NCBI GenBank assembly: GCA_964187785.1
Contig: OZ076414.1
Coordinates: forward strand, 72,354,001 to 72,418,000
Reading direction: 5' to 3'
Origin: Amphiscolops sp. MND2022
Taxonomy: Eukaryota
Length of the DNA: 64,000 nt
Shown: positions 609 to 18,031 of the stretch, piece after piece
Position numbering within the stretch: the stretch's first letter is position 1
How the letters are laid out: each line of letters starts with the position of its first letter
The notes under the pieces: generated by a model
What the model was told of the DNA's origin: nothing
Database searches by the model: none
What the model saw: the letters and a program-made list of their open reading frames with translations, nothing else
Made by a program: the position numbers and the translations under genes

Positions 609-1130
609 CACGACAATTCGTACACACGACATTTCGTACACACGACATCTCGTACAAGAACCAAAACCAGTCATTTCGTACAAAAGCGAAACCAGACATT
701 TCGTACAAAGATGAAACCAGACATTTCGTACAAAAATGAAACCCGACATTTCGTGCAATTTATATTATACAACTTATTATTATAACGTAGTCAGCTATGT
801 TCACATACCCCTAGTGCCCTAAATGCAGGAGCGAAGCGAAGCGGAGCGACGTGCCATTTGGCCATGCCTTAATGTTGCTACTTGGCGAAGGGGGCGAAGC
901 GACCGAGCCATACAACATATATTCTAACCTCTTTGATTGAATCAAGTTCCATACATATTGGCTGTAACAGCACTGAAAGCTAGTAATTGTGTCGTTTGAG
1001 ACCTATTTTGCAAATCTGTTCAATTTAATTTTGTACGAAATGTCCGGTTTCATTTTTGTACCAATTGTCCGTGTACGAAATGTCGGGTTTTTGGCTATTG
1101 TACGAAATGTCGTTTGTACGAATTGTCGTG
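609..1130. mobile_element. Foldback-like MITE with terminal inverted repeats and subterminal tandem repeats
   Basis: Left end CACGACAATTCGTAC (609) is the reverse complement of right end GTACGAATTGTCGTG (to 1130). The left arm has ~7 copies of GACATTTCGTACA and the right arm has inverted TGTACGAAATGTC copies. No clean TSD found. Confidence 0.7.
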
Positions 1131-2044
1131 GTGCCATATAATTAATAAACACTAATTTGTGGTTTCATCACGCACGGTCCTTATTCAATTTCCAGGCTTA
1201 ATAAATATATACAGTTAATTGGAAACTTGGAATTTGAACTCAAAAATTTCGATTTGCCGTGGATATATACAACCTCGAATACAGTTTAGAGATTTTTCAG
1301 CGTTGTACATTCTGTATCTACAGATTACGGGAAAAACAAGTCCTGTAAACCTCAAATCGCAAAAATTTCAAAGTGTTTGCTAATATTGTATATTGATACA
1401 GTGCTTTCACATGTCATTTAATATTGACTGAGTCGAAAGTAATTTCAATGATTTGTTTTCTAACGCAAATAGAATAAATCAGTCTAAACTATTTCTTCAA
1501 TGACCTTATTTTTTTCCAAGGCCTTAGTTTTTTGGTCACAATCTGTTCGCCCAACACGTTCAAAGCGTATCCAAAGAGGACAAAAGGTTGCCCTTTGATT
1601 CTTTCATATTTTTCCTTGAATTACAAAGCTATTTTGAGACCAAAGTGCCTTGTTTTGGCGGGTTCCAGTACTGCCATTTTTCCTGGAATTTTTTCAATTG
1701 AAATATTCGGTTTTATGATGTCTCGGAAGCTAGGAAAAAACGTTTTCGGTACCCAGGGAGCCCCCTTTGGATATTTTAATTCAATTGTGGGATTAATATT
1801 TTAAAATTTTGGCTCTTTAATATGTGAAGGAGGTACCAAGCTGAGCTCAAACTGCTCAATTATTATTTTATATAATATAGCCCGCCCTCGTATAATGGGG
1901 GAGGAAAATCATAATCTGTGTTGTGTTTTTTTCCAAATTCTGCAAAGTTTTCCATTATTTCTCCATTTATTACTAGTTTAGTAATTTGGATTTATTACTA
2001 GTATTACTCCATTTCTACTAGTAAATAGTAATTTGGATGTTTTA

Positions 2045-2128
2045 GTCACTGTGGCACACTTGGTAGTGCGTCTGCTTGGCAGAGACGAGGTCGTGGGTTC
2101 GAACCCGTGTTGATGCGTTACATTTTTT
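2045..2128 (+). mobile_element. tRNA-derived SINE head or tRNA pseudogene
   Basis: A-box-like TGGCACACTTGGT, D-stem GCAC/GTGC, B-box GGTTCGAACCC and a downstream T-run (2123-2128). Acceptor and T stems are imperfect, so it is not called a functional tRNA. Confidence 0.6.
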
Positions 2129-2419
2129 GCGGAAAATATCCCGGTGCTTAGCGGGCGTCTTGTTATTCACGTCATTTGTCCAAAACTAAACAAGCCGGGA
2201 AAGGCCCAAGCCTCATCTAAGGCTCAAAAATCAAAGAAAGTCTTATAGTACTGAAAACCAGACCTTAAAGCATTACTTTGGACGCAATGTCATATGAGAA
2301 ACCTTTTAGCACTTTTTACAGCTTTGAAAAATTTTCTCAGAAACGTTATATCGGGAGTTCGCTATAAGTAGTTTGTTTTTATTTCTAGTAAAACCGGCAG
2401 GGGGTGGTGTTTGAAAAAT

Positions 2420-4857
2420 GATACCTTGCAAGCTATCTGCCAAAGGAAAAGTTCAAGATACTCGACAATTGCTTCGCTGATTATCCGGAAACAGACCGAG
2501 ACCTTTTGCATCAGAAGGGATACTATCCCTACTCCTACTTTGACGATTTCAATTAATTTCAAGAACAGAAGCTACCACCACGAGAGTTGTGGAAAGATTC
2601 GCTGCGAAACGGTGCAATTATGTTGACCCAAGAAGAATGGAAACATGCTGTCAAAGTCTATGAGCAATTCAATTGCTCAAATTTGGGCGATTATCATGAT
2701 TTGTACCTCAAAACCGACACATTGATTCTAGCATGTGTCGTTGAGGAGACAAGACTGTGTTACAAGACCTATGGCTTGGATAGCGCTCATTACTTCACTT
2801 GCTCGCATTTGTCTAATGACGCTTTCTTGAAGAAATGCCGGGCAGACATTGAGCTCCTAACTGATCGCTCTCATCTAGAAATGGTGGAAGACATGATAAG
2901 AGGCTGTGTTGCGTCTGTATTCGACAAAAGATTTTTCAAAGCAAACAACAGGTATGTGACACAGCATAATAACAACGACTATAACACCTACGGCGTACTC
3001 TTAGACGCCAACAATTTATACGGTGGTATCATGGAAAAATTTCCATTGCCGTTGAACAGCTTCGAAATAGTTCCAGATATAAACCTCAACAAAATATTGG
3101 AGGCACCCAATGACTCGGAAGAAGGGTACATTTTAGAAGTGGACCTCCATTACCCTGATAGGCTCCGTGACAGACATGAAGATTTTCCGTTAGCTCCAAC
3201 AAAAGAAAGAATATACTACAAAAGTTTGGGAGAAAAGCAGCAAGAACAGTTGGCACTATTGGGCGTAAACAGGCCATTTAGTCAAAGCAAAAAACTTATA
3301 CAGTCACTTTCGGTTAAGAAAAACTACACTGTGCACTACATAACACTGAAACTGTATGTTAGCCTCGGTATGGAAGTAACAAAAGTCCATCGTGCCCTGA
3401 AATTCAAGCGATCATATTGGCTGAGGCCCTTTATGCAGCTAAACACTGAAAAAAGAAAAGAGTCACGAAATAAATTCGAGGAGAGCTTCTTCAAATTGAT
3501 GAACAATTCATGCTACGGGAAAACTCTGGAGAGCAAACGCAATCGCCTCACTGTGCAGCTAGTGACCAGTAGAGAAAACGTTTTGAGACGAACTGATACC
3601 TCATTCTTTTGCGAATTTGAAATTTTCAATGAAAATCTCGCTGCAATTTCATCGCGAAAACGATCAATTTTGTGGAACAAACCAACAATAGTCGGAGCAA
3701 CTGTTTTGGATTTAGCAAAGTACCCATGTTTAACTTCCACTACAATGTAATGAAAAAGCACTTGAATCGCTTTGTGCTATATTCCGATACTGACTCTTTG
3801 TTATATGAGATCAAACACACGGACTTCTATGAGGAACTCGCCACAAACGATGAATTACGTCAACACTTTGACCTCTCCAATTACCCCACGGATCATCATC
3901 TCTACAACATCGACAACAAGATGGTCACACTCAAGTTTAAGGACGAATTAGCGGGAGAGCCTATCGAAGAGCTTGTTGGTGTGAAACCCAAAATGTACTC
4001 CATCTTGGTTGGAGGAAAGCAAAAGCTGTCTGCCAAAGGAGTTTGTAAATTCGCACAAAAAGAGCTGACCCATATTCTCTACAAAAATGTTTTAAATACG
4101 GGCGAAACCTACAAGACAATGAACACAAGAATTGGGTCGAGTAAACATCAATTGCAAACCATCAAGGTCAACAAGGTATCCCTCAGCTCATTCGACGATA
4201 AAAGATTCATTTTGGAAGATGGCATTTCAACTTTGCCCTTTGGACATTATATGATAAGAGATGTTCACGTAACACAAGACGTTTTTGATGAACCAGATTG
4301 GGGTTATGAAGAAGAAATGCCAACAAGTCCCACGTGGGACGAACTAAACGGCAATGACCCCCAAAGTACAATCACTCAAGTATTTCCAGAGGAAGCACCC
4401 ATGCCGCCAAATGCTCCACTTCCCACGCAATTTCGTGGGCGGTCTCGGTCAAGCGACGAGGAAGCAATGACTCTTACTGAAGAATTGATGGAAGAATGGT
4501 CGCCCCCTGATCCGGGATTCAACCAAAGAGTACAGCGACTCGGAGTTGGAGGAAGGCGAAGACAACTTGAATGATATTCCAAAGGAGCAGAGCCCCCTGC
4601 GAAACCCATTCATCGATGATGAGGCGGAGGTAGCATGGGATGTAGAGGGCGAAACTGCACAACCAGAAGACGAAGAGTCAGACCCCGATGACTGCGTGGT
4701 GGTCGCCCATCTGACCGAAGATGAATCAAATGCAATCGAGGACTTGGAATACTTAATCGATTTCGACAATTGGTTCAGCGATGATGAATTTGTGAACCGC
4801 ATCAAAAGAGCAAAAAGAAGGCGTATGGAAATTGTGAGCGACAGTGAGAGCGAATAA
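2420..4857 (+). pseudogene. Polinton/Maverick/adintovirus-type family-B DNA polymerase (pPolB), 5'-truncated and disrupted
   Basis: Motifs in order: LLHQKGYYPY, DYHDLYLKTD, YGLDSAHY, LDANNLYG (motif A), KLMNNSCYGKT (motif B), YSDTDS (motif C), KMYS, AKGV, FDDKRFILEDGISTLPFGHY. Lesions: in-frame TAA at 2554-2556, frameshift at ~3724 (AKY/HMFNFHY) and a probable frameshift at ~4530 joining the acidic tail. AATAAA follows at ~4862. Confidence 0.9.
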
Positions 4858-5016
4858 AACAAATAAATATCATTGCAAATGCTGATAGCTTCAAACGAAT
4901 ATGTGCTGTAATCATTGTTTTACTCTTTGTTCTCAAGTACTTGTTGAAGAAAGTTTCAAGTGGTTTTGAGTGCTTCAATAACTTTGTGAATTCAGTCTTG
5001 TTTCGCTCCCACTTTA

Positions 5017-6156
5017 TTGGCCGGCGCGATAGCTAATCAACGCGTAGTAAGACATCACATGAACGGTTCTATGGAACGTACTACAGATCAATCTTTCAAT
5101 ATACAGTACCATACTATAGGTCTAAAACGACTAGGACTGGATATACACCGTCGTATAGGACGTATATTTGATCTATCTTTCGTTATACAGTACCAGTACC
5201 ATAATATAGACAAGAATAGGCTATCGTCCGATATTCATGGCTACATAGGACGTATATTTGATCTGTCTTCCAATATACAGAACCATACTATAGACCTGAA
5301 TTGGCTTTCATCCGATATTCATGGCTATAGAGGACGTATATTTGATCTATCATTCAATAAACACTACCATACTATAGGTCTAAAATGGCTAAGACTGGAT
5401 ATACACGGTCGTATAGGAGTCATATTCGACCCATCTTCCAATATACAGTACCATACTTTAGGTCTAAAATGGCTAAGACTGGATATACACGCTCGTATAG
5501 GACTCATATTCGATCTATCTTTCAATATACAGTACCATACTATAGGTCTAAAATGGCTAAGACTGGACATACACGGTCGTATAGGACTCAAATTCGATCT
5601 ATCTTTCAATATACACTACCATACTATAGGTCTAAGGTGGTTAAAACTGGATATAGACGGTCGTATAGGACTCATATTCGACCCATCATTCAATATACAG
5701 TACCATACCATAGACCTGAATAGGCTATCATTCGATATGCATGGCTATATAGGACGTATTTTTGATCTATCTTTTAATATACTGTTACATACTATAGACC
5801 TGTATAGGCTATCATTCGATATACATGGCTATATAGGACGTATATTTGATCTATATTTCAATCTACAGTTCCATACTATAGACCTGAATAGGCTATCATC
5901 CGATATGCATGGCTATATAGGACGTATTTTTGATCTATCTTTTGATATACTGTTACATACTATAGACCTGTATAGGCTATCATTCGATATACATGGCTAT
6001 AGAGGACGTATATTTGATCTATATTTCAATATACAGTTCCATACTATGGACCTGAATAGGCTATCATCCGATATGCATGGCTATATAGGACGTATTTTTG
6101 ATCTATCTTTCAATATACAGTTCCATACTATAGACCTCCATCGCAGGCCGGCATAA
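5017..6156 (+). other. Stop-free frame through the 87-bp minisatellite (379 aa); coding status doubtful
   Basis: Open frame from the ORF track. It begins at TTG (first ATG at ~5059) and has no recognisable domain. Confidence 0.2.
5091..6137. repeat. 87-bp minisatellite, ~12 units, two sub-types
   Basis: 29-aa periodicity in the 5017..6156 translation (FDLSFNIQYHTIGLKWLRLDIHGRIGLI versus FDLSFNIQFHTIDLNRLSSDMHGYIGRI). Confidence 0.95.
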
Positions 6157-6370
6157 TCATGGCCCTATATTTAAGAAAAAATCTCAGTTGCACAGATGTC
6201 CAACTGGAAACCGACCATTTGCTTGGTGGACCTTTTGTCAATGGTTTCATTGCTTACGGCAAAGACAAAAAAGGAGGAAAAGGAATGAATTATGAAATAG
6301 GAAGGCAATAAAAATGGTCACAAACATGATAACATTTCCGGAACGATAAACAGGAAAAGAAATGAGCTGA

Positions 6371-7171
6371 TCAACATTCAAGGTAACAAGTTGCATAATA
6401 TTCTAGAGTCTCAATCTCTAGTGAGAGCATCGAAAATTGCGAAGTGAGAGCATCGAAAATTGCGAAAGCTTGATTAGCTAAATCTCCTTTAACATTGCAA
6501 GTAAAATTGAGGTGGCATATATTCAGAAGTAATGAAGACATAGGAGTTTTCAATTCAGTATTTCCCGCGTTTCTGTTCAGCTCAACCCGTATTGATCCAC
6601 GTTTAACCCTCATGTTTTCATGAATTTTTATTTTGCGGATTGATCGTTTAGCAGATCTAGTAGTCCCCGTAATCGCATCTTGCAATTCTTTTTCATAACA
6701 TGAAGATATGCCCAAAAATCCAGAACATCCAACTGCAACGATTACTTTGTACTTCTTGGGCTTACGAAGGGGTATGGTTTTCAAGACCTCAATTTTCAAA
6801 AACCCACCAGCTAAAAAATCGATAACTTCAGGTTCAGGAGCTGTTGATTTTACAGTAAAAAGTTGGTGCAAAGATTTGATCTTTCCTTTTGCAACCAATC
6901 TACCAATTTTACTGCAGGGTTTCCAATTTTTGGAATGTTGTTCAATCGCAAAGGACGTTTGGTGGGAGTCTCTCGATAACGCTCCCTTGTTATGCTGGGC
7001 TTGTAAATTGTTGAGGTTCATCAGCCGATAGGGGAGCCTCACTATTTTCGGTGGTTTTGCTCTCGAGGCAAGCAATGAAAATGCTTCATCTGGGCGCTCG
7101 TATTTTTCTTCCCAGAAGTTCCATAAAATGTTCATATAATTATTTTGGTAAGAATGCATAAAAGGATCCAT
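6371..7171 (-). CDS. RPS2-like: Highly divergent ribosomal protein uS5 (40S RPS2)-like protein, intronless, 266 aa
   Basis: Collinear match to eukaryotic uS5: [23 protein letters not shown] ~ [42 protein letters not shown] ~ [44 protein letters not shown] ~ [35 protein letters not shown] ~ RCGSVLVRL; AIFDALT ~ ATFDAIS. Confidence 0.85.
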   Translation of the reverse strand: [266 protein letters not shown]

Positions 7172-7936
7172 GTTCAGGCAAGAAAAGATTTTTCAAAATA
7201 AATTGATCGAAAACTAATTGGATCTGTTCAACTGTTGCAGCTGAATTCTAATCACGAGTCTGTAAATGATCTTCTTCCTGTAATACTACAATTGGATGAA
7301 GGAATTTTAAGAAAAGTCTCACTTTGGTCTCACTGGACAACTTCAATGAGCAGCGGAAGTCGCTGGTTTTTGGATTAAAAAGTTTTTGATAAGATGCGCT
7401 CACCTATTAGGAAAACAGATTTCAAACAGACTCGCGTATTTCAGAACTTCCACATGTAATGTTTTCTCTTTATTCAGGAACCCCTCAGTTTTAAAGCTAT
7501 CTAAGCACACAAAAATGCCGACTCCAGACCACTCAAATCATATGTTAACATTGCTAATTTCTGACCTGCACAAATTTCACATGATTATCACAGAAGTTCT
7601 GCAATTTCTGCAAATAAACTGCAAGCGCAGGCCACTATAAAGCAGCTTTGTTAGCATTGCTTCAATGGTCTAAGAAGAGAGATATTTAATCAGCCAGAAC
7701 AGCATAGTTTCAATGATTGAAATCGAGACAAATCCAAAACAAATTGCAGCACATTGTTGCCGGATAAAACATTACACATTTAATCAGGATCAGCTACTAA
7801 ACAGGACTGCTTTAATTATAAATGATAAAAAATTATTCCCATACATAAACGTGAAATAGTTTCATAGAATTCTGCATAGGAAGTATGAATTAGCCATTAG
7901 TTTTAATATGACTTGGATTAAATTCGAAATTTTCAA

Positions 7937-8001
7937 GCGCCTGTAGCTCAGTCGTTAGGTAGTCTGACTTTCAACCTTACGGTCCCCGGTTCGCATCCGG
8001 T
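7937..8001 (+). mobile_element. tRNA-like sequence (SINE head or pseudo-tRNA)
   Basis: TAGCTCAGTCGTTAG A-box and GGTTCGCATCC B-box; CTGACTTTCA core shared with the element at 8113; no proper acceptor stem. Confidence 0.5.
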
Positions 8002-8112
8002 AAAAATATATATATTTTGGATTTGAAAGCCATGAATGATAGCTAGTCATAACTAACCGCATGCCGCTACAGGCTGAATGGTTATATATTTGAACTAAAT
8101 GTATAGATTTCA

Positions 8113-8185
8113 GATCGCGGTGGTCCAGTGGTTAGCTTCTCTGACTTTCAGTCATGAGGTCCCTGGTTTGAATCCCGGACTTGGC
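8113..8185 (+). mobile_element. tRNA-like sequence (SINE head or pseudo-tRNA, TTC loop)
   Basis: TGGTCCAGTGGTTAG A-box, TGAC/GTCA stem around TTTCA, GGTTTGAATCCC B-box-like; acceptor stem does not pair. Confidence 0.5.
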
Positions 8186-8199
8186 AAAAATTTTGGAAA

Positions 8200-8250
8200 T
8201 TTTCAAACACCACCCCCTGCCGATTTTACTAGACATAAAAACAAACTACT
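8200..8250. repeat. Dispersed repeat; inverted copy at 2367..2417
   Basis: TTTTCAAACACCACCCCCTGCCGATTTTACTAGACATAAAAACAAACTACT is the near-exact reverse complement of 2367..2417. Both lie near a GAAACGTTATATC motif (~2340 and ~8389). The 2367 copy abuts the 5' truncation of the pPolB. Confidence 0.85.
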
Positions 8251-9237
8251 GCTATATCCGTTTCGCGTTAAATCCGGTATGGGTTGTGTCGTTATATCCG
8301 GTATTCGGTATATCGGGTTTGCGTTTAATTGGGTTTGGGCCAAAAAAATCTGAAGGGGGACCTTTTAAAACATTGAAAAATCCTCCAAGAAACGTTATAT
8401 CCGGTATACGTTATAGGTGGAATTCGTTGTCCGGTTTGCGTTTAGTCGGGTTTGCGCCAAAAAATCCAGAAGGGAAACCCTTTGGACACGAAAACTGGCT
8501 TATGTTTACTGAAAACATCAATAAAATCAAAAATGGAATCAAAAATTGAGTCCTCTACTTTTTGCAATGATTCAGTTTAGGGTTTTGACATCGCTGAACC
8601 TAATTTAATAATTTTAACATTTTTTCCAAATAATTTAATGTTTGAGTTCAAGTATCTTTCGAGATTGAATGATTTACCTATTTTAGGTTTGCAATAAAGC
8701 AGACTGAAATTTATATATTCTTTTTTCTTTATATATTGTTTTGAAATTCCGAGTATACTCGGAGATTTTGAATTTCGACATTTTATTAGCTAGCGCTAAT
8801 TTGAACCGCTAATGAAATCGCTGAAACACTCCTGAGCGGCCTCAAATCCATTAACTTGCTAATTAGCGGCGTCAAAACTCTGATTTAGTTGTACTAGGCA
8901 TCCGTCTAGCGGTAAAGATACACCCCTTTTATGCGGTCAATGGAAATCTTTTTGATAATTTCTCACCATTTCAGATCAAGGCTCTTCAAATTATTCCATT
9001 TATACGAAGTTATTCCATTTCGAATGACACGCCCTCCATGTACTAAGGGCATGAACTGACACGCCCTTCATGTACTAAGGGCATAAAGTTCTATTTCTCT
9101 TTACACCATATCACGGTTTCAGTACGCGCGGTCTTTATCTAATCATATTGGTAAAAGGGAAAAAACACTTCTGTCTTCCATTTCGAATTGAAGGAAGTAA
9201 ACGTTTTTGTTTAAAATAACTTAGGAAAACTTAAATA

Positions 9238-9406
9238 CACCACTCCGTTTATAACGATTACGTTTATAACGTTATTACGGTTATAGCGATAGTTTCACGG
9301 TCGCTTCCACGATGCTAGTATATAAGGATTTTCGCCTATAACGATATTCGGATATAACGATTAAAAACGCCGGTCCCTGGACAGTCGTTATAAGTGGAGT
9401 TGAGTG
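9238..9406. mobile_element. Tc1/pogo-type MITE (~169 bp)
   Basis: TA|CACCACTCCGTTTATAACGA ... TCGTTATAAGTGGAGTTGAGTG|TA: imperfect TIRs with TA on both sides (9236-37, 9407-08). Confidence 0.8.
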
Positions 9407-9474
9407 TAAACTCAATTTGCAGATTGTGCCAATTTCACTTCAAATCCTAAATTGAGAAATTAACTTTGTTAGAA

Positions 9475-9891
9475 ATGACTACAAACTTCATCACATTCCA
9501 AGGAAGGCGAGGGGGGAGCACCTATTTCCATGGTGGGGACTACCTGTACCTCAAGTCAATGGAGAAAGGGGAAACGACATATCTAAAGTGCCAGGTCAAG
9601 ACTTGCCAAGCGACAGCCGTGGTGCGGAACCGTCAACTCATTGAAAGAAAGGCCCACAATCATGCAGCACCGACAATCCAAGAACTAGAAGACCTGAGAC
9701 GGCTGGCAAGCGTCAAGGACGAAGCCGAGAGGACGATTGAGGGCCCTGGCTGCAGCCAACTTTACGACGATGCAGTCACGAGGTCCGAGACGTCCTCCAC
9801 TGGCAGGGCCGAAGCTACGAAGCGGCGGTGTCAGGCGTTGGCGGCTATGCGTCAGCGCCGAAGCCGCCGTCGAAGAGCGGAGGCCCAGTGA
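9475..9891 (+). CDS. FLYWCH/WRKY-GCM1-type zinc-finger protein (Mutator-transposase-related), 138 aa
   Basis: GRRGGSTYFHGGDYLYLK...TYLKCQVKTCQATAVV...KAHNH fits the FLYWCH C-x4-C...H-x-H pattern. ATG at 9475. No MULE DDE domain follows. Confidence 0.75.
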   Translation: MTTNFITFQGRRGGSTYFHGGDYLYLKSMEKGETTYLKCQVKTCQATAVVRNRQLIERKAHNHAAPTIQELEDLRRLASVKDEAERTIEGPGCSQLYDDAVTRSETSSTGRAEATKRRCQALAAMRQRRSRRRRAEAQ

Positions 9892-10932
9892 AGCCTTGAC
9901 CTTGCTTAGCGACATCTATAAATATACTCTCTATGTAACATTTTATCAAATTAGAGTTCAAATTTTCCAAAATTGATTGGGTAATTTTCTCATTCAACAC
10001 TTTATTTCTCAATCTTTACCAATTCTTCATTTTCTCATGTCTTCATACATGTTTTGTACATTTGTGACCCATTTCATTCCCCACCTATGTTGTCGCTTGG
10101 CAAGTCTTGGTCCTGGCAAACTTCAGTTGTTTTCCCTTTCTCCATTGGTGCCTAAATTCAGATTTACAATGTAGTCCCACCATGGTTTTGCTTCCACTTT
10201 GCTTTTGCTTTCCTTGGGAATTTAGTTATTTAGTTTCTTGTTTTTCCTAAGTTTCCCTTAGTCTGAACAAGGTCGAGAAATCAGTTGAGAAAACAAGCTA
10301 CTTGAAGGAATAGTTTCACTAGAATGATAATCAAATTTCTGAGTATTCTTGAAAAAAGCAACAAATATTATATCTGTGTCATGAAAGTTCAAAATGGTGC
10401 AACGGAGAGTAATTTATAGAATACAGAGTTAGAATTTCATTGGGAACAGACATTCCGTAGTCGATAGAAGAGTGTCCACTGAGACTTAGAACTCGACCGT
10501 AACCTCAAAACATAAAAAATAAGTGTTTGCGTGACTAGCGTCAAAAATAAGTGTTCGTGTGACTAACGTCAAAAACGGTAGGTAATTATGTAACATCGGG
10601 TTTTTGCGTCGTCATAATTTTTTCAGCACTGGTGGAACTAGTTTCCCACTTCAGGGGTTTGAATGGCTTGCGGAAAACTTTTACGGGATATTCTCAAGGA
10701 CGAATAGCTCCTTTGGAAGCAAGCAGTCTACACATACCAAATAACCCCCTCAATATCTTAATACTAATGGTGCAACTTGGCACTGCTATTGCCTCAGCGA
10801 TGTTATTTGTCCAGCGCAGCGTAATTTTGAGTGTAGTTTGGCATTGCGATTACTTATCAATATTATTATTATTAATGTTTAAGCTGGGTTGACGCTGAGA
10901 GAAACCTGGTTTTCCATGTATGTTATTAATAG

Positions 10933-13900
10933 AAGAAACTTGAGCTTGAGTTGGTTGTAGGTCGAGGAAGGCCCCCTAGATTCGTGGACTCACCCCGCAA
11001 TGAGCCCAAGAGGCTGCCCGTTTTGGGGGTGAGACCCAAAACTACCTGTGCTACTGCCACTGCTGTTATCACTGCTGCTAATACCTCCTCACCTGCTACA
11101 CACAGTAATGTCCAAGTGAACACAAACCACTTAACTCCTCCTTCTGCCAATAATTCAGTGAGTAGTGAAAAAATAATCAGTGAATAATGATTTCCCTTCA
11201 ACATTTAAAGGACATGTAAATGAGATTCATAATGACTGTCTCCCAATTTTTAAGGCCAAGGAAAGTTTTTTCGGGGTTGCTTTGGACATTGTCTAGTTTC
11301 TTGTAAGAAAATCGTTTTGCTTGAAATTTTGAATTCCTGGCTTTCATCAAAGGTTTTTCAGGAAGTTAAGTATGCTTGAGAATGATTTGAGTGAAGCCGA
11401 TTTTAGTGTTTCGCTTTTATTGTTGAGAAAAAAATGGTCCGAAAATATGTTAATTTGTTGGGAATGTATTCGTTTTGCACTGAAAGTAATCGCCCGAATA
11501 TTGGAATTGAATTTTATAAAAATGAAAAATGGAAAGTCGTGACTTTTTATATTGAAAACAATTTCCGTGAGGTAAAAATCATTTGAAACATGATTACCTT
11601 TTCAAACAGTTTTACAATGATTTCTGTTGTGTATTTTAGTCCTACTTGGTGGTCCCAATAAATGCCTCTGCCTCCCAAAGCATCTCATCTCCCATGTACC
11701 AGTTGGTGACACCCACGTACTCAAACCCAGGAACCCCCCCTGTCGACAGAAACAACCTCCAAAATCAAGGTGCCAACGGCCTCAACCAACGCCAAATACC
11801 TGACAACAGTGTCCTTTATAAAGATAGATCATCGTCAATAGTCCAATCTCCAAGACGGGTCGAACCCTCGTTCAATCAAGTGAATAACAACACCTTACGT
11901 AATTGCGAATCGTCGTCAGTCAATGTAATCCAGAAACAGTCGTCAATATCCAATCAGAATCAAGCAGTTCCCTTCGCAAATCAGAATCGAGCAATCTTGT
12001 TGCCCAATCAGAATCAGGCTACGTCATCATTCAGTCAACATCTATTAAATTCAATGGCCAATCAGAATCAAGCAGTGCCAACGACCAATCAGAATCAAGC
12101 AGTGCCACCGACCAATCAGAATCAAGCAGTTCCGCCGACCAATCAGAATCATGTTATTGATCTGGTATCGGATGATGACGATGATTCCGAAACAAATTTA
12201 TCCAACTCTTCTAACCTGTCTTCTCAAAGATTTTTGCCGCAGAATAATTCGCATTTACTCCTCAATCCGAGCAACAATTACAGAAACGCTCTTGAAAAAC
12301 AGAAACAACAGCGGCGAAAACGGGGTAGAATAAACAACAGAGCCGATGTTTTGCTGCCTGTTACGACTGAAATTGAGAAGATGTCGAATTCGATAGAAGC
12401 TGCGATCCACGATCTGCCCCCAAAACTTCTGCTGAGTGCAAGTCCCACCGAAAGCAACAACAACCAGAACAACACAGGCAGCAGTCGGGGCATAACTCTG
12501 ATATGGAAGATGTCTGTGCCCAAGGCCACTAATTGCAGAATCAAGAAGTACGAGTTGATGGCTAATACAGGTAGGGGTTGGAAAATACATTACTTTTGTA
12601 TTCTAAGCTGTGGGTATAAAACAATTTACAATGGAAGCCGCCGGTTAAATGGGACACGCGTATAAGAGACAACGCTTAATTGGCACGCATACTATTTCGA
12701 TCCCCTCGCCTACCTGGCCGTATTTCGGTCAAATGTACTATTGATATAAGAGACAACGGATATAGTAGACAACAATATATGGGAGGTCCCGAGACGTCCC
12801 ATATAAGCGGCTTCCACTGTACTGAGAGAATCTCGTTTCTGATCAAACGTAGTTTACATAACCAAACATAAAATGACACAGCACAACTTTATATCGGTAA
12901 TTTACTATCGGTGTCTAAATAGGAAGGTATGCCTACAGTTGAAACTCGGTAGATGTCGATTTCGAATTTCACTGTCGTTAAATGACGGATGAATCGTATA
13001 ACAATTACATGAACTGATTCGAGAAGTATCTATAGGGTTGGCTTAAATACATGAAAAACTATATTACCGACGTTTAAAAAGTTAAAAGCGTTTAAAGCAT
13101 GTTTTAATCTTATTTCTTTCTTTTTGGTGCTAAAACTGACGATAATGTGAAAAGCAAATTCAACATTCAAAAGCTCTCAAACAAAAGCTAGTTTTTCATT
13201 TTTTTCGTGTTTCAATCGATTCCGTATCTCTGAATTGAAAAAGTGGCGGCAAAAGTTGGCTAGGAAAATTGCCGAAGTTGGTCTAAGAACGAAGAAAATG
13301 ATGATAATTATAATAATAATGACAATTATCTGTTGAATGTTACTAACAAAACAACGAACAATTTATAATAAACAAATTCAGCAGAAGCGACTTCCAGAGG
13401 CAAAAGCCCGTTCAATGGAAGCCTCAAAACAATCAAATAGAAAATGAGTCGTGTCTGATAGATTTTCTATAAAAAATGATTCATGAATTGGTTTCAAAAA
13501 TTATCAAGTGTCATTATTTGAGAAGCTTATCAGTGTTTTTTCAACCAAAAAAGCGAATTTCCCTGAGACGAAAATCAGAACGTACAGTCAGGATCTTGTA
13601 TAGTCATAAATCTTGATGTAAGAACTTAGCATGACTGTAATCGAACTATTCTCATATGCGAACTCGACAAACATTATAAGTTTTAAACGGACCCAGAAAG
13701 TAAATTCTTATAAACGGTTTATTCCTGTAAACGGGCGCACTATATGCGATCCTGACTGTAAATCTAGATTATGGTTTTGGAAATTTTTGAAAGTGATTGT
13801 TTCGTCTTATTTAGTCCTCAAAGAGTTGATTATTTGTTGCCATTTTTGTAATTAGGAGTCGGAGAAAAAATTGCTCCCGACGTTCCAATGAAAATTTCAA

Positions 13901-14612
13901 ATTTCCTAAAAACTGTCCATGCGGTTTTCATAAATCACAGAAAGAGCACAATCATTCTACATCATATTAAGGTCCTATGTGTGCAATGGCATCAAAATCG
14001 TATGACTGGGATGTGAGAAACGTACTCAAAATTAGTCCAAAATGACCAAATGACAAAGTAACCATTTTGTATTTCAATATTTTAATTGGTTTCCGACTCC
14101 GTTACCGCATATGCGGCTCTGATTTTCACCAATTAGTGGACTATAGGTGTAGTGTATCTATAATGAAAATTTCACCTGTTAGAAACAAGTAATCTAGCAA
14201 TTTTTTGATCTAAAGTAATTAGATTCCGCGGAGCACACCCCCCCCCCCAGCCCGCTTGAAGGAGCCTATCCTAAACAACTTACAAGCTCAAATTTTCACC
14301 ACCAAAAACACTGTTATAAGAAATATGGAACATATACTGTGTTTGTAAGAAGAATTACCAAATGAATTATTATTATTCCTGTTCCCAGGTTTGAATACCA
14401 ACAGTTCTGACGGCGGGAGCAGTAGTGGCTCCGGATGGGTGCTTGTAGACAGTATAGCCCCTCTAGTGCTTCCAATGCAGTGTAGCCTCACAAATCTCAA
14501 TCCCGGTGTCATCCATTTCGCCATTCGAGGTGTCGACGTGTTCAAACGCGCCGGAGATTACTCTAACGTAGTCACCGTGTCCAACCCCAAGCCAGTTGCT
14601 GCTACCAAATAG
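10933..14612 (+). CDS. ATF7IP: ATF7IP/MCAF/Windei-like gene, 3' exons: ~10933-11157, 11640-12570, 14389-14612
   Basis: The spliced C-terminus GITLIWKM...IKKYELMANTG|LNT...GWVLVDSIAPLVLPMQCSLTNLNPGVIHFAIRGVDVFKRAGDYS matches the ATF7IP C-terminal FN3 domain (GIVLSW...W..IGEVKALPLPMACTL...YYFAVRAKD..GR.G). Donors GTGAGT (11158) and GTAGGG (12571) and acceptors TTTTAG (11639) and CCCAG (14388) give consistent phases 0 and 1. The first acceptor (10932 or 10960) is uncertain and upstream exons were not found. Confidence 0.75.
12629..12819. mobile_element. Tc1/pogo-type MITE (~191 bp) in the ATF7IP-like intron
   Basis: TA|CAATGGAAGCCGCCGGTTAAATGGGAC ... GTCCCATATAAGCGGCTTCCACTG|TA: imperfect TIRs with TA flanks. 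Confidence 0.8.
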
Positions 14613-14821
14613 AATTACCTCTTTCTGCCCACTGTTATCGTCCTGGCAGAAAGATGCCATGATTTTGTTCATGATTATCTATTTATTAGTAGTATTTATA
14701 TCAACTTATTCCTCAGTATTTACCTCTTTTCGCGGCCTATAGTTTTTGTGAAATTGATGATTAGATTGTAAGTAGTCTACAAATTCCCGATACGGCTCAG
14801 AAAACCTTCAAATTTCGAGAA

Positions 14822-16411
14822 AATAGCCCTGAATTAGCAAAAATAGTTTGGTTTTGAGCTTCTAAAATCAGTGAAGAAAACCCGCTTTTTTAGAGAGCAG
14901 TTTTGTTCAAACCATAACAAAAAACTTGTCCTTTCCAAGGACGGAAATGTACATTGGAATAAAAGGTTTCCTCTATGTGAGAATATGAGTGTCTGAAAAT
15001 TGACCATGAGGAACTGTCAGTCTAAAATGTTCAATCCAAATAAATAGCCTTTATCTCTAGTGAATTTCTATCGAAAGTGAAGCAACAACGAACTTGAAGT
15101 TTCAAGAAGTTGGTAAGCAGCTAGCTTTCAAAACGGGGATTTTTATCAGATCAATTCAGGATTTGTAATTTCACTTCCAGGAAAAGGAACACACTGGGAT
15201 ATGCTTACAAATTAGTTTTATTCCGATTCATGAGTATGCCCTCCTCGATAATCCATTCTTAGTCAAAATCGAATCTGAAAATGGAAAGTGTATTTACCCT
15301 AAATCCTCAGTGTGCTTCTTACTGTGTTTAATTTCTACCTTCTTCCGACTAGAGAGAATATTTCGTGACTTTGTTTCAAAAATGCAGTTTTGAATTTGTA
15401 TTGTGTAAAGGTTCCTTTGGGTTTAGGAAAATTAGCTTTCAGTGATTCTTACTCAGTTGTGTTTAGGAGTTAGCTTGCGACTATGCCTTCCTAAACCTTT
15501 ACAAAAGTTGTCTCTAGGTCTTCCGAGTTCGCAGGAAGGACTTCGTTTCGAGAGAATTTAATTTTATGAAAAGAATTTGAATTAGTTTGAGTATTATATT
15601 CAACAATGTTCGTTTTTACACAATACGCAAGAATATAATACAAGCAGAACAATATGATCATCCAAACTGATACAAATATCCAATGAACAAAGTCAGAATT
15701 GTTTAACATTTACCAAATAAATACATCAATGGATTAAGGTAGCAATATTCAGGTAGGTCGTTTAAATACTATAAAAACTTGAATTTCGGAGTCCTTATAC
15801 GTCCAACAATTTGTTAGGACGAAGAGTATGGAATTTTTGGTGTGTTCAGACCTTGTAATGTCTCTTAGTTTTCTCAACAAAATAGTGAGATTTGTTAAGT
15901 CTTTTGACAACGGTGTGACAAGCTTGTCAGGAGTTTTAGCTTATAAGCTGAAGAGTTTAAATATTAGGTTTTAGCTTATATGACAAGCAATAGCTAAGTC
16001 GAAGACAAGTTTGTCTAACGTCAAGGCTTTGAAAGTCTTGCAAGTCCAAGTAAAGGTCTTATTAACCAGCGTTTAGCTAGGTTTTGTGTTTGGACAGGCT
16101 TGCCAAATGCTCGAACATAAGGTTCGGCACAGTACTTTAAGAGTTTAACTCATGTGACTAGCAGGGGCTAATTCGAAAAGAGAATTTAAGAGATTACGTG
16201 CATTTTAATTTCAACTTTAATTTAGTTATGTTAACTTTGACTAGGATTTGCTGACTCTTGACGCGATAACGTGCTTTGGAGATAAGATAAGTCTCAATCG
16301 AGAAGCTGGATTTTTGGAGCGTTTAGCTCAAGATAGAATTCCCTATGATTGCATAGGAGAATCTTGTTGGTTAACTTTCTGTTCAGTCGATTGACTGCGA
16401 AGTTTCTGTCA
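14822..16411 (-). repeat. Long LTR-like repeat, piece A
   Basis: Aligns with 33340..~35090. Its right ~680 bp (15733-16411) also appear, apparently identical, at 26082-26762. Confidence 0.9.
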
Positions 16412-18031
16412 GAGTTGTTGTTTGGCACACTGGAGTTGTTCTTTAACACGGCCGAGCTCGACTTTTGTGTCCTCTAGCTGGTCCTCTAGCTGTCGTCCTC
16501 TAGAATCGGCTGAAACCATAGAAAAATTTCAATCAATTCAAATAGGCGATTCATGAATCGCAACAGGAAGACGCAGGAAAACGCAGGAAGACGATGCATG
16601 AAAATTTGAAATAAAAAATACCTCTTGCGAGTTGTTCTTTAACACGGCCGAGCTCGGCTTTTGTGTCCTCTAGCTGTCGTCCTCTAGAATCGGCTGAAAC
16701 CATAGAAAAATTTCATTGGCTAGAAAGAACGGGTTTTTACTTAATTTAACCCAACAAAACGCAACAAGGAAGACGATGCGTGATATAATCTGAAATAAAA
16801 GTTACCAATGGCTTTCTGAGCCTCCAATTCCTTGAAGAGCTTCTCGACTGCTGTCTCTTCTTCAGTGGCTTCTTCAGTGGCTTCAGTGGCTTCTTCAGTG
16901 GCTTCAGTGGCTTCTTCAGTGGCTTCAGTGGCTTCTTCAGTGGCACCGTCTGCCATCTCATCTAAACATAGCCAAAGGTGGAAGGCTTTGAGCTGAACGA
17001 AAAAAGATTTTCTGCCAAAGTTCTCGAAACCCAGGTTGACGCACGCTGCAAAAGCGCAATAACGCCATAATAATATTATGCCTTATGAAAATGAGTTTTT
17101 CCACCATTTCTTGAAGCATATTCGAACGATATTCTATCAAACCGAAGGAATAGCTTAAGTAATAGCGATTAGTATTTACATACCTATGAAGTCTGCCTCA
17201 CATACGACTTTCCCCCGCCAGCAGTTTTCATTCTCCCAATAGTGGAAGGTGTCCCCCCCTTTAACACTTTCAGCCAATAAGCCGTTTTTGTACAGGGGGA
17301 TTTCGCGTGCAGGGGAGTCGTTGGGCACCCAGAGGTGCCTGAGGTTGGTCCAATGCCTCTCCCCAATGCTCGTGTTGTCTGTGGACCAGTGCCACTCGAT
17401 GAACACGAGCCAGTTCGTCGTCTTGTCATCCACCTGAACAGTTTTCATGCAACATGTAAACATATTTCGAACATTCTAACGGTTTGAAAACCAATTTATT
17501 ATATTACAAGTTTTCATGTGATTGCAGGAACCTAAACCCTCATCATTTTTTTCAGGAACCTAAATCCTCATCATTTTTTTCATATCATCAAGAACACCAC
17601 TCTATGTATATAAATGGCTGACACATAGTATTTTCCACCACACAAAAATGAACGACGACTATATATCATAATTTTTTATAAAAGAATCTAAATGCGAGGT
17701 TCTCAAATCCTCCTAACCTAGTGGTAAGTCTTAGTCCGGCTTAGTCCGTGGTTTGAGGTCCACTTGAGGTCCGTTTGATTCCGGATCAATTTTGTATGGT
17801 GGGGTCAAAATGTTTTCAGCTACATGTTGGTGGGGTCAAAAGGAAAGACCCGTAAAATCTTAAGTATAGCAAGTAACTCACCTCACGAATGAGCAAAAGG
17901 TCCGATAACTGGTGCTGGCATTTGGACTTCTTTCTGGAGGGACCTCTGACACTGTGGCCGCGGGCCACGCCGTGGATCTTGTTTTCGGGGATGGAGTGGA
18001 TGTCACCTCCGTTCAAAATTCGGGGAGCCAT
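16409..18031 (-). CDS. Predicted 5-exon gene (242 aa): Trp-rich SH3/Tudor-like domain, EATE acidic repeat, coiled coil. Exons 18031-17882, 17433-17184, 16961-16806, 16693-16622, 16509-16409
   Basis: All four introns are GT..AG (donors GTGAGT, GTATGT, GTAACT, GTATTT; acceptors TTCAG, TTTAG, TTCAG, TTCAG) with matching phases 0,1,1,1. Exon lengths 150+250+156+72+101 = 729 nt, stop-free until the TGA at 16411-16409. A possible acceptor at ~18070 means exon 1 may be internal. Confidence 0.7.

Follow-up and report, generated by a model that had tools for sequence, protein, structure and literature searches.

The window, a 64,000-nucleotide stretch of the genome of Amphiscolops sp. MND2022, contains at positions 2367–8250 an internally deleted, non-autonomous 5.9-kb element of the Maverick/Polinton type. 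An open reading frame (ORF) on the reverse strand of this element, at 6371–7171, is related to the small-subunit ribosomal protein uS5 (RPS2) and had been taken in the initial annotation for an intact, radically remodelled paralogue of the host gene. The element and its flanking duplications comprise the following features.

2361–2366, no strand: left target-site duplication (TSD) GCTATA, read directly; the same hexamer stands at 8251–8256
2367–2417, forward strand: left terminal inverted repeat (TIR), starting AGTAGTT, found by repeat search; full-length relatives start alike
2425–4526, forward strand: remnant of the gene for the protein-primed family-B DNA polymerase (pPolB), covering residues 572–1272 of a 1272-aa relative in two frames (tblastn)
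5086–6137, no strand: 84-bp tandem array of 12.5 units with 81% matches, between pPolB and the uS5-like gene (TRF)
6371–7171, reverse strand: uS5-like ORF of 266 aa, from ATG to TGA
aa 1–77 of the ORF, reverse strand: leader, delimited by alignment with host RpS2
7016–7048, reverse strand: out-of-frame stretch of about 11 codons (aa 43–52) between a 1-bp and a 2-bp deletion
6629–6940, reverse strand: S5_N-like core of the ORF (aa 78–181)
6440–6616, reverse strand: S5_C-like part of the ORF (aa about 186–244)
6421–6466, reverse strand: perfect 23-bp tandem duplication (TRF 6420–6466, period 23, 2 copies, 100%)
6374–6439, reverse strand: 22-aa C-terminal tail of the ORF (aa 245–266), frameshift product of the 23-bp duplication
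about 7937–8006 and 8113–8185, forward strand: two tRNA-like stretches with A-box and B-box-like motifs, read by eye
8200–8250, reverse strand: right TIR, found by repeat search and followed by the TSD GCTATA at 8251–8256

The two TIR arms (2367–2417 and 8200–8250) are 51 nt long and 96% complementary. The left TIR is joined at position 2425 to the last 700 codons of pPolB, and the homology of every compared relative begins exactly at this junction, the N-terminal 571 residues of the polymerase and all genes upstream of it having been deleted. The two pieces of the pPolB remnant are 80% and 75% identical to the 1272-aa relative (tblastn), and window 2587–3747 matches the Pfam family DNA_pol_B_2 (PF03175; 32.7 bits, cut-off 25.8). 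Both the rve integrase and the A32-type ATPase are missing from the window copy, the integrase because it is located in the deleted part. The uS5-like ORF retains about 750 bp of its own upstream sequence.

The 379-aa ORF that runs across the 84-bp array is spurious. Another ORF, of 144 aa, lies beside the array in relatives and looked conserved; it was rejected as a gene because the 84-bp repeats account for half of its translation. The array itself is kept at ~80% nucleotide identity between subfamilies, against only about 50% identity for their uS5-like proteins. The tRNA-like stretches lie in the interval that separates the uS5-like gene from the right TIR, and C2, one of the two nearest copies of the element, preserves them at 96%; over 7937–8185, ARAGORN made no call and Rfam gave no match at E ≤ 0.1. 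Word depth in public sequencing runs rises to 1,500–16,000 from window 8166 onwards, and the element end and its flank are therefore very highly repeated.

The full-length form of the element, obtained by comparing 20–40 kb around six copies, is 16,932 bp long. It is bounded by 42-bp TIRs (100%) that begin AGTAGTT and is flanked on both sides by the TSD TTAACG. Its polymerase comprises 1272 aa with the motifs YGG, NSCYGKT and YSDTDS; phmmer of pPolB against the PDB gave no match. An A32-type packaging ATPase is recognized by Pox_A32 (PF04665; 23.8 bits, cut-off 22.8), and a putative rve integrase, encoded by a split gene, stays below its cut-off of 32.6 with 30.6 bits (E 4e-7). The match to Peptidase_C5, an adenain-type protease, is weak, at only 14 bits, and a 441-aa capsid candidate has no Pfam match. 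A 252-aa uS5-like ORF lies near the right end, on the opposite strand.

In a phmmer search of all PDB chains, residues 78–181 of the window ORF correspond to residues 38–148 of eukaryotic uS5/RPS2. The top match is the Drosophila chain 4v6w_AC (E 4.7e-15), 88 distinct chains are matched at E ≤ 0.01, and the apicomplexan uS5 proteins of Plasmodium and Toxoplasma are collinear with the ORF to residues 250–259. With an E value of this size, the uS5 homology is clear despite the sub-threshold score in Pfam, where the profile search proposed in the initial annotation recovers Ribosomal_S5 only (19.1 bits, below the 27.1 cut-off) and PF03719 (Ribosomal_S5_C) gives no match at E ≤ 1. The score of an intact relative is likewise below the Pfam gathering score of 27.1 (Ribosomal_S5, 19.2 bits), and precomputed PF03719 matches are present in the relatives P0009 and P0018. 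A PHROGs scan of the window ORF and the intact relative returned no family.

The host's own RpS2 exon (L014) aligns collinearly with the window ORF, at an identity of only 33%. In this alignment the RG-rich N-terminus of uS5 gives way to a 77-aa leader in the window ORF, the QKQTRAGQRTRF loop of host RpS2 is represented by RKPKKY, and the RRGYWGNKIG-PHTVP segment is absent. The initial annotation had described an ORF collinear with uS5 in which a new leader replaces the Gly/Arg-rich N-terminus, the QTRAGQRTRF loop is shortened and a conserved segment is lost, and the PDB matches and the host alignment bear out each of these points. The remodelling of loop, linker and leader is common to the whole repeat family and not peculiar to the window locus. 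The leader motif YMNxLWNFWExKYERP (aa 8–31 of the window ORF), which may be a docking peptide, is common to the window, C4 and L011 types and missing in the other uS5-like clades. In host RpS2 an intron follows the exon represented by L014 and L016; the window ORF is intronless. Contig C5 carries two nearly identical copies of the first coding exon of canonical RpS2, L014 (G000:C5:873983) and L016 (C5:66370654), which lie about 65 Mb apart.

In a maximum-likelihood tree, canonical eukaryotic uS5 forms a tight, short-branched and well-supported clade (98/94). Three element-type clades lie outside it and, relative to archaea, inside a eukaryote-plus-element group; monophyly of the element types is allowed, with weak support (62/44). 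In the alignments, every element-type sequence has a truncated QTRAGQRTR loop and lacks the N- and C-terminal extensions, and the GYWGNKIG linker is deleted in the clade of the window, C4 and L011 types and variably reduced in the other two. The element-type uS5-like proteins are basic, with a core pI of 9.5–11.4.

The third uS5-like clade (L013, L015, L017 and L018–L024; for example, G000:C2:28679809 and C4:26572643) is arginine-rich, with a core pI of 10.6–11.6. Two of its types carry PAPRG and two carry PAPTS/PAPAG. It includes seven near-identical copies of one type and adjoins a different tandem array, and no Maverick proteins were found within the 1.5-kb flanks of the L013/L017/L018 type.

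An intronless ORF set against an intron-bearing host gene might be a processed pseudogene, that is, a retrocopy of host RpS2 mRNA. However, no poly(A) tract stands downstream of the stop codon of the window ORF, which lies within Maverick TIRs and shares with other copies a homology that continues for kilobases past its ends. Its leader and loop deletions recur in Maverick copies that are 30–50% identical to it, its identity to host RpS2 is low, and its place in the tree is outside the canonical eukaryotic clade, not beside the host gene. A retrocopy is accordingly scarcely credible.

Lesions of the window ORF were scored by DNA alignment with its two nearest copies, C2 and C11. The C2 copy, which is identical to an ENA contig, shares 89.5% identity with the window over 2.8 kb, well past the ORF ends. 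Both copies are broken, C2 by a stop at codon 21 and C11 by a +1 frameshift, and no intact member of the window's subfamily is present among the matches listed in the genome search. The window ORF carries a 1-bp deletion and, 33 nt further on, a second deletion (2 bp relative to C2 and to the allele described below), which jointly restore the frame. A 9-bp deletion relative to C2 and C11 lies inside the S5_C part, and GKCG is changed to VKRG. Neither C2 and C11 nor the allele has the 23-bp duplication, which throws the reading out of frame shortly ahead of the native family stop, and the 22-aa tail that results is foreign to the family protein (pLDDT 63–71 in the AF2 model). In the same model, the S5_N core (aa 78–181) is undamaged, with pLDDT above 90, and one S5_C β-strand is lost. 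The leader, described in the initial annotation as novel, thus comprises 77 non-RG residues with an out-of-frame stretch at aa 43–52, between two indels, and the last 22 residues of the ORF are a frameshift product.

A second version of the locus came from the search of representative proteins described below. P0082, a 103-aa protein, carries the window's out-of-frame peptide, and its contig (L045) is collinear with window 918–17216 at 98.57% identity over 16.3 kb. As the match includes the flanks, L045 is this very locus as it stands in a different haplotype, a different individual or a very close relative. Its uS5-like ORF is split in two: the 1-bp deletion is common to the window and L045, the 2-bp deletion is private to the window assembly, and the 23-bp duplication is absent from L045. 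Because L045 has the same state as C2 and C11 at the sites of the 2-bp deletion and the duplication, both changes are derived in the window. Contigs from four public runs, which represent two samples of one study, carry two extra bases at full depth (GA inserted behind position 7012), and no contig among them spans 6438–6509, the site of the duplication. With L045 and the four runs all frame-broken, the open frame is seen only in the window assembly, owing either to a private allele or to a consensus error. Among the public RNA runs indexed, none contains the stretch, a weak argument against expression.

The nearest copies diverge with ratios close to neutrality. By the Nei–Gojobori method, dN/dS is 0.54 between the window and C2, where just 21 substitutions (7 synonymous, 14 non-synonymous) underlie the value, 0.94 between the window and C11, and 0.81 between C2 and C11.

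These results bear directly on the proposal of the initial annotation, according to which the ORF would be a host-domesticated uS5 paralogue, selected for a specialised ribosome or an extra-ribosomal role. In its favour stand the unbroken 266-aa ORF and the well-modelled S5_N core, but the ORF is enclosed by the TIRs and TSD of a dead Maverick and carries compensated frameshifts, a deletion and a read-through tail. Its frame is broken in the other haplotype and in the four public runs, dN/dS is near neutral, and the genome matches listed hold no intact subfamily member. The comparisons of alleles and of dN/dS, both suggested with that proposal, thus went against it. With its element gutted and its frame broken in other samples, the ORF does not behave as a host gene kept for a new role, and domestication is very improbable. 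The window ORF is, with high confidence, a decaying copy of a uS5-derived cargo gene of Maverick/Polinton elements.

The reopened copy could in principle still be a working cargo gene, expressed from a non-autonomous element and supplying its product in trans to other Mavericks or the host. Its frame is open, its S5_N core is intact, both TIRs are present, and about 750 bp of upstream sequence is retained; against this, an S5_C strand is lost through the 9-bp deletion, GKCG has become VKRG, the leader is partly out of frame, and the open state occurs only in the window assembly. We consider continued service as cargo improbable. As a decaying copy, the window ORF is most likely without function, and some residual activity is conceivable because the frame is open here and the S5_N core is intact.

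The family to which this copy belongs is large. A search of the organism's own 1.07-Gb genome gave 96 matches to the window ORF and at least 150 matches to S5_C. Seventy-one pPolB places, out of 4076 first-look candidates, were scored by comparing coordinate tables by eye. A uS5-like match lies beside at least 60 of the 71, on the opposite strand and 2–5.5 kb past the pPolB 3′ end; this is a lower bound given by the uS5 matches listed, and the other 11 places do not count as absences. ENA contigs of other subfamilies have the same layout of pPolB and uS5-like gene, and homology among the copies extends kilobases beyond the ORF. The family gene is of eukaryotic uS5 origin and holds a fixed position in the element.

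Open frames of 1470–1483 aa are found at many of the 71 scored pPolB places. The host carries a very large, partly young Maverick load. At G000:C12:37267478–37273669, S5_C matches recur at a spacing of 746–748 bp in at least five units, and these repeats look like a tandem satellite from a fragment of a uS5-like gene.

Within one subfamily, copies are open and 99.2–99.9% identical. Subfamilies within the one host genome differ by 50–75% in uS5-like sequence, with pS of 0.64–0.80 (synonymous sites being saturated) and pN of 0.21–0.47. The resulting pN/pS between subfamilies is 0.26–0.6, which corresponds to a corrected ω of roughly 0.3 or less; for the C4 type against the window type, ω is roughly 0.25 after correction. 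Comparisons involving dead copies give 0.78–0.89. The ratios between subfamilies indicate that the uS5-like gene family is under purifying selection. The view that the remodelling was selected, rather than a product of decay, accordingly holds for the family, all relatives of which share it, and fails for the window copy, which has not been kept open.

The uS5-like gene also evolves much faster than its neighbours in the element. Identity between the L046 and C4 elements amounts to 95–100% in the capsid-module proteins, 80.6% in pPolB and only about 30% in the uS5-like protein, a mosaic that points to recombination between the left and right halves of the element. A near-identical capsid module combined with 80% identity in pPolB and about 30% in the uS5-like protein is a pattern typical of host–parasite interface proteins.

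The two-domain uS5 fold is predicted to be kept in the family protein. The AF2 model of an intact relative reaches a pLDDT above 90 over the greater part of its core (aa 78–250), and its leader is disordered save for a helix at aa 8–22, which covers the YMNxLWNFWE motif. When this model was searched against the PDB with Foldseek, the top 50 matches were all eukaryotic uS5 (TM about 0.72, r.m.s.d. 2.3–2.4 Å, 32% identity). Structure prediction, which the initial annotation had proposed as a check, thus supports a uS5 fold for the intact relative, and the model of the window protein lacks one strand of S5_C.

Taken together, the data suggest a history in which an ancestral Maverick element acquired a eukaryotic uS5 (RPS2) gene. 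Its descendants kept both globular domains, the dsRBD-like S5_N and S5_C, and lost or reduced the parts concerned with 40S anchoring and the mRNA channel, namely the RG-rich N-terminus and the C-terminal tail together with the QTRAGQRTR hairpin loop and the GYWGNKIG linker; a new N-terminal helix, seen in the model, was gained in one clade. In the element, the gene lies towards the right TIR and is convergent with pPolB. At the window locus it was already frameshifted when the two known haplotypes split. A later 2-bp deletion would then have restored the frame by chance in the window assembly, and the 23-bp duplication would have removed the native stop, leaving a seemingly intact 266-aa ORF.

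The intact family protein could be a substitute ribosomal protein, replacing host uS5 in the 40S subunit and giving rise to element-biased ribosomes. Its two domains are predicted to be arranged as in native uS5 and to resemble the uS5 of 40S subunits closely in structure, its basic charge is retained, and there is a precedent in the phage ribosomal proteins that enter host ribosomes (PMC6375957). However, the rRNA-anchoring and mRNA-channel extensions are deleted, and the proteins diverge by 50–75% within one host genome. Extensions are the chief hold of ribosomal proteins in rRNA, and canonical eukaryotic uS5 sequences differ far less than 50–75%. As canonical eukaryotic uS5 is a tight, short-branched clade, the divergence of the element types is hard to fit to a single rRNA site. 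The lack of extensions and the divergence among elements of one host together make an integral 40S component unlikely.

The intact family protein is most likely an extra-ribosomal, basic RNA-binding factor that serves the element. One possible role, which we put forward tentatively, is to blunt RNA-based silencing or to shield the RNAs of the element. With the same reserve, the protein may instead be directed at the ribosome, acting on the 40S or pre-40S subunit from outside and tuning the translation of element mRNAs, a role with which the retained ribosomal arrangement of the two domains would also agree. A genome-condensing core protein is a further possibility. More broadly, we regard it as plausible, with confidence a little short of even, that an animal Maverick lineage has long kept a trimmed uS5 as a fast-evolving cassette beside pPolB, directed against host translation and 40S biogenesis or against silencing.

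Searches beyond the genome of this organism yielded few further members. Among 1.84 billion representatives, 627 matches were obtained, and the element-type sequences among them are confined to a single ENA assembly, whose source is this organism or one very close to it, and to P0012 on two contigs of other samples. P0012 (192 aa, without GYWG and with the short loop) is encoded on L047 and L048 (ENA ERZ23498984; Logan SRR24961302), contigs of about 1 kb; the origin of these contigs in samples other than the organism's assembly is a hint of the gene in another host. A scan of IMG/VR with the family alignment gave 183 pattern matches, of which none was confirmed. JGI metagenomes contained 330 relatives, and the best 17 of 80 loci, when translated, were all canonical eukaryotic uS5 (GYWG, PAPRG). 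The ESM Atlas returned canonical uS5 clusters only (score ≤ 0.87), and BFVD no viral protein with this fold at E ≤ 0.001. In the literature searched on Maverick/Polinton elements and ribosomal proteins, a uS5-derived cargo gene was not found.

At the window locus, an apparently intact, strongly diverged ribosomal-protein ORF is a transposon relic that should not be annotated as a gene and that stands open by chance in one haplotype or assembly. The family behind it has a wider bearing. A conserved Maverick uS5 would add a core small-subunit protein to the short list of ribosomal proteins of eukaryotic viruses and, if true, would be the first core ribosomal-protein homologue in a eukaryotic virus-like element. 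It would also offer a testable handle on how Mavericks, which are poorly understood, deal with RNA silencing or translation in the host.

uS5 is a core, early-assembling ribosomal protein. The Maverick type is homologous to eukaryotic uS5 (RPS2), collinear with it over both domains, similarly basic and close in predicted fold (TM about 0.72), and it has the eukaryote/archaea-type segment W-x-P-x-T-K-L-G-R-L-V before S5_N. It differs in being at most 30–40% identical, multi-copy, element-carried and fast-evolving.

A possible analogy exists with the E3-type dsRBD proteins of poxviruses, which conceal dsRNA and resemble the family protein in being small, basic and fast-evolving, in their dsRBD-like α-β-β-β-α arrangement and in their origin from a DNA virus or virus-like element. 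Foldseek gave no significant match to poxvirus dsRNA-binding proteins (E 0.09–0.14, TM ≤ 0.3), and the E3-type proteins have no counterpart of S5_C, so any resemblance would lie in possible action only.

The elements themselves agree with Mavericks/Polintons of the adintovirus type in their TIRs, 6-bp TSD, pPolB, A32-type ATPase and variable end cargo, and the putative rve integrase would fit the same type. Diverse accessory genes are listed for adintoviruses (PMC8502044), and the word 'ribosomal' is absent both from that paper and from the coral polintovirus paper. In keeping its TIRs and TSD, having lost its interior and depending on others for movement, the window copy is like other internally deleted, non-autonomous DNA transposons; unlike them, it has half a polymerase and a cargo gene in place of a short MITE-like body.

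Ribosomal proteins encoded by phages are known, including bS21, bL12 and others, and virus-encoded ribosomal proteins tend to be those easily exchanged between ribosomes (Mizuno et al. 2019, PMC6375957). Eukaryotic viruses were thought to be without ribosomal proteins before eL40 was reported in giant viruses in 2024 and described as the first ribosomal protein in a eukaryotic virus (PMC11499249); uS5 is unmentioned in both papers. The family described here joins two known kinds of gene, the viral homologues of ribosomal proteins and Maverick cargo. With the former it shares the presence of a host ribosomal-protein homologue on a mobile or viral genome, and it differs from them in that the protein is a heavily trimmed core uS5 and the carrier an integrating animal Maverick.
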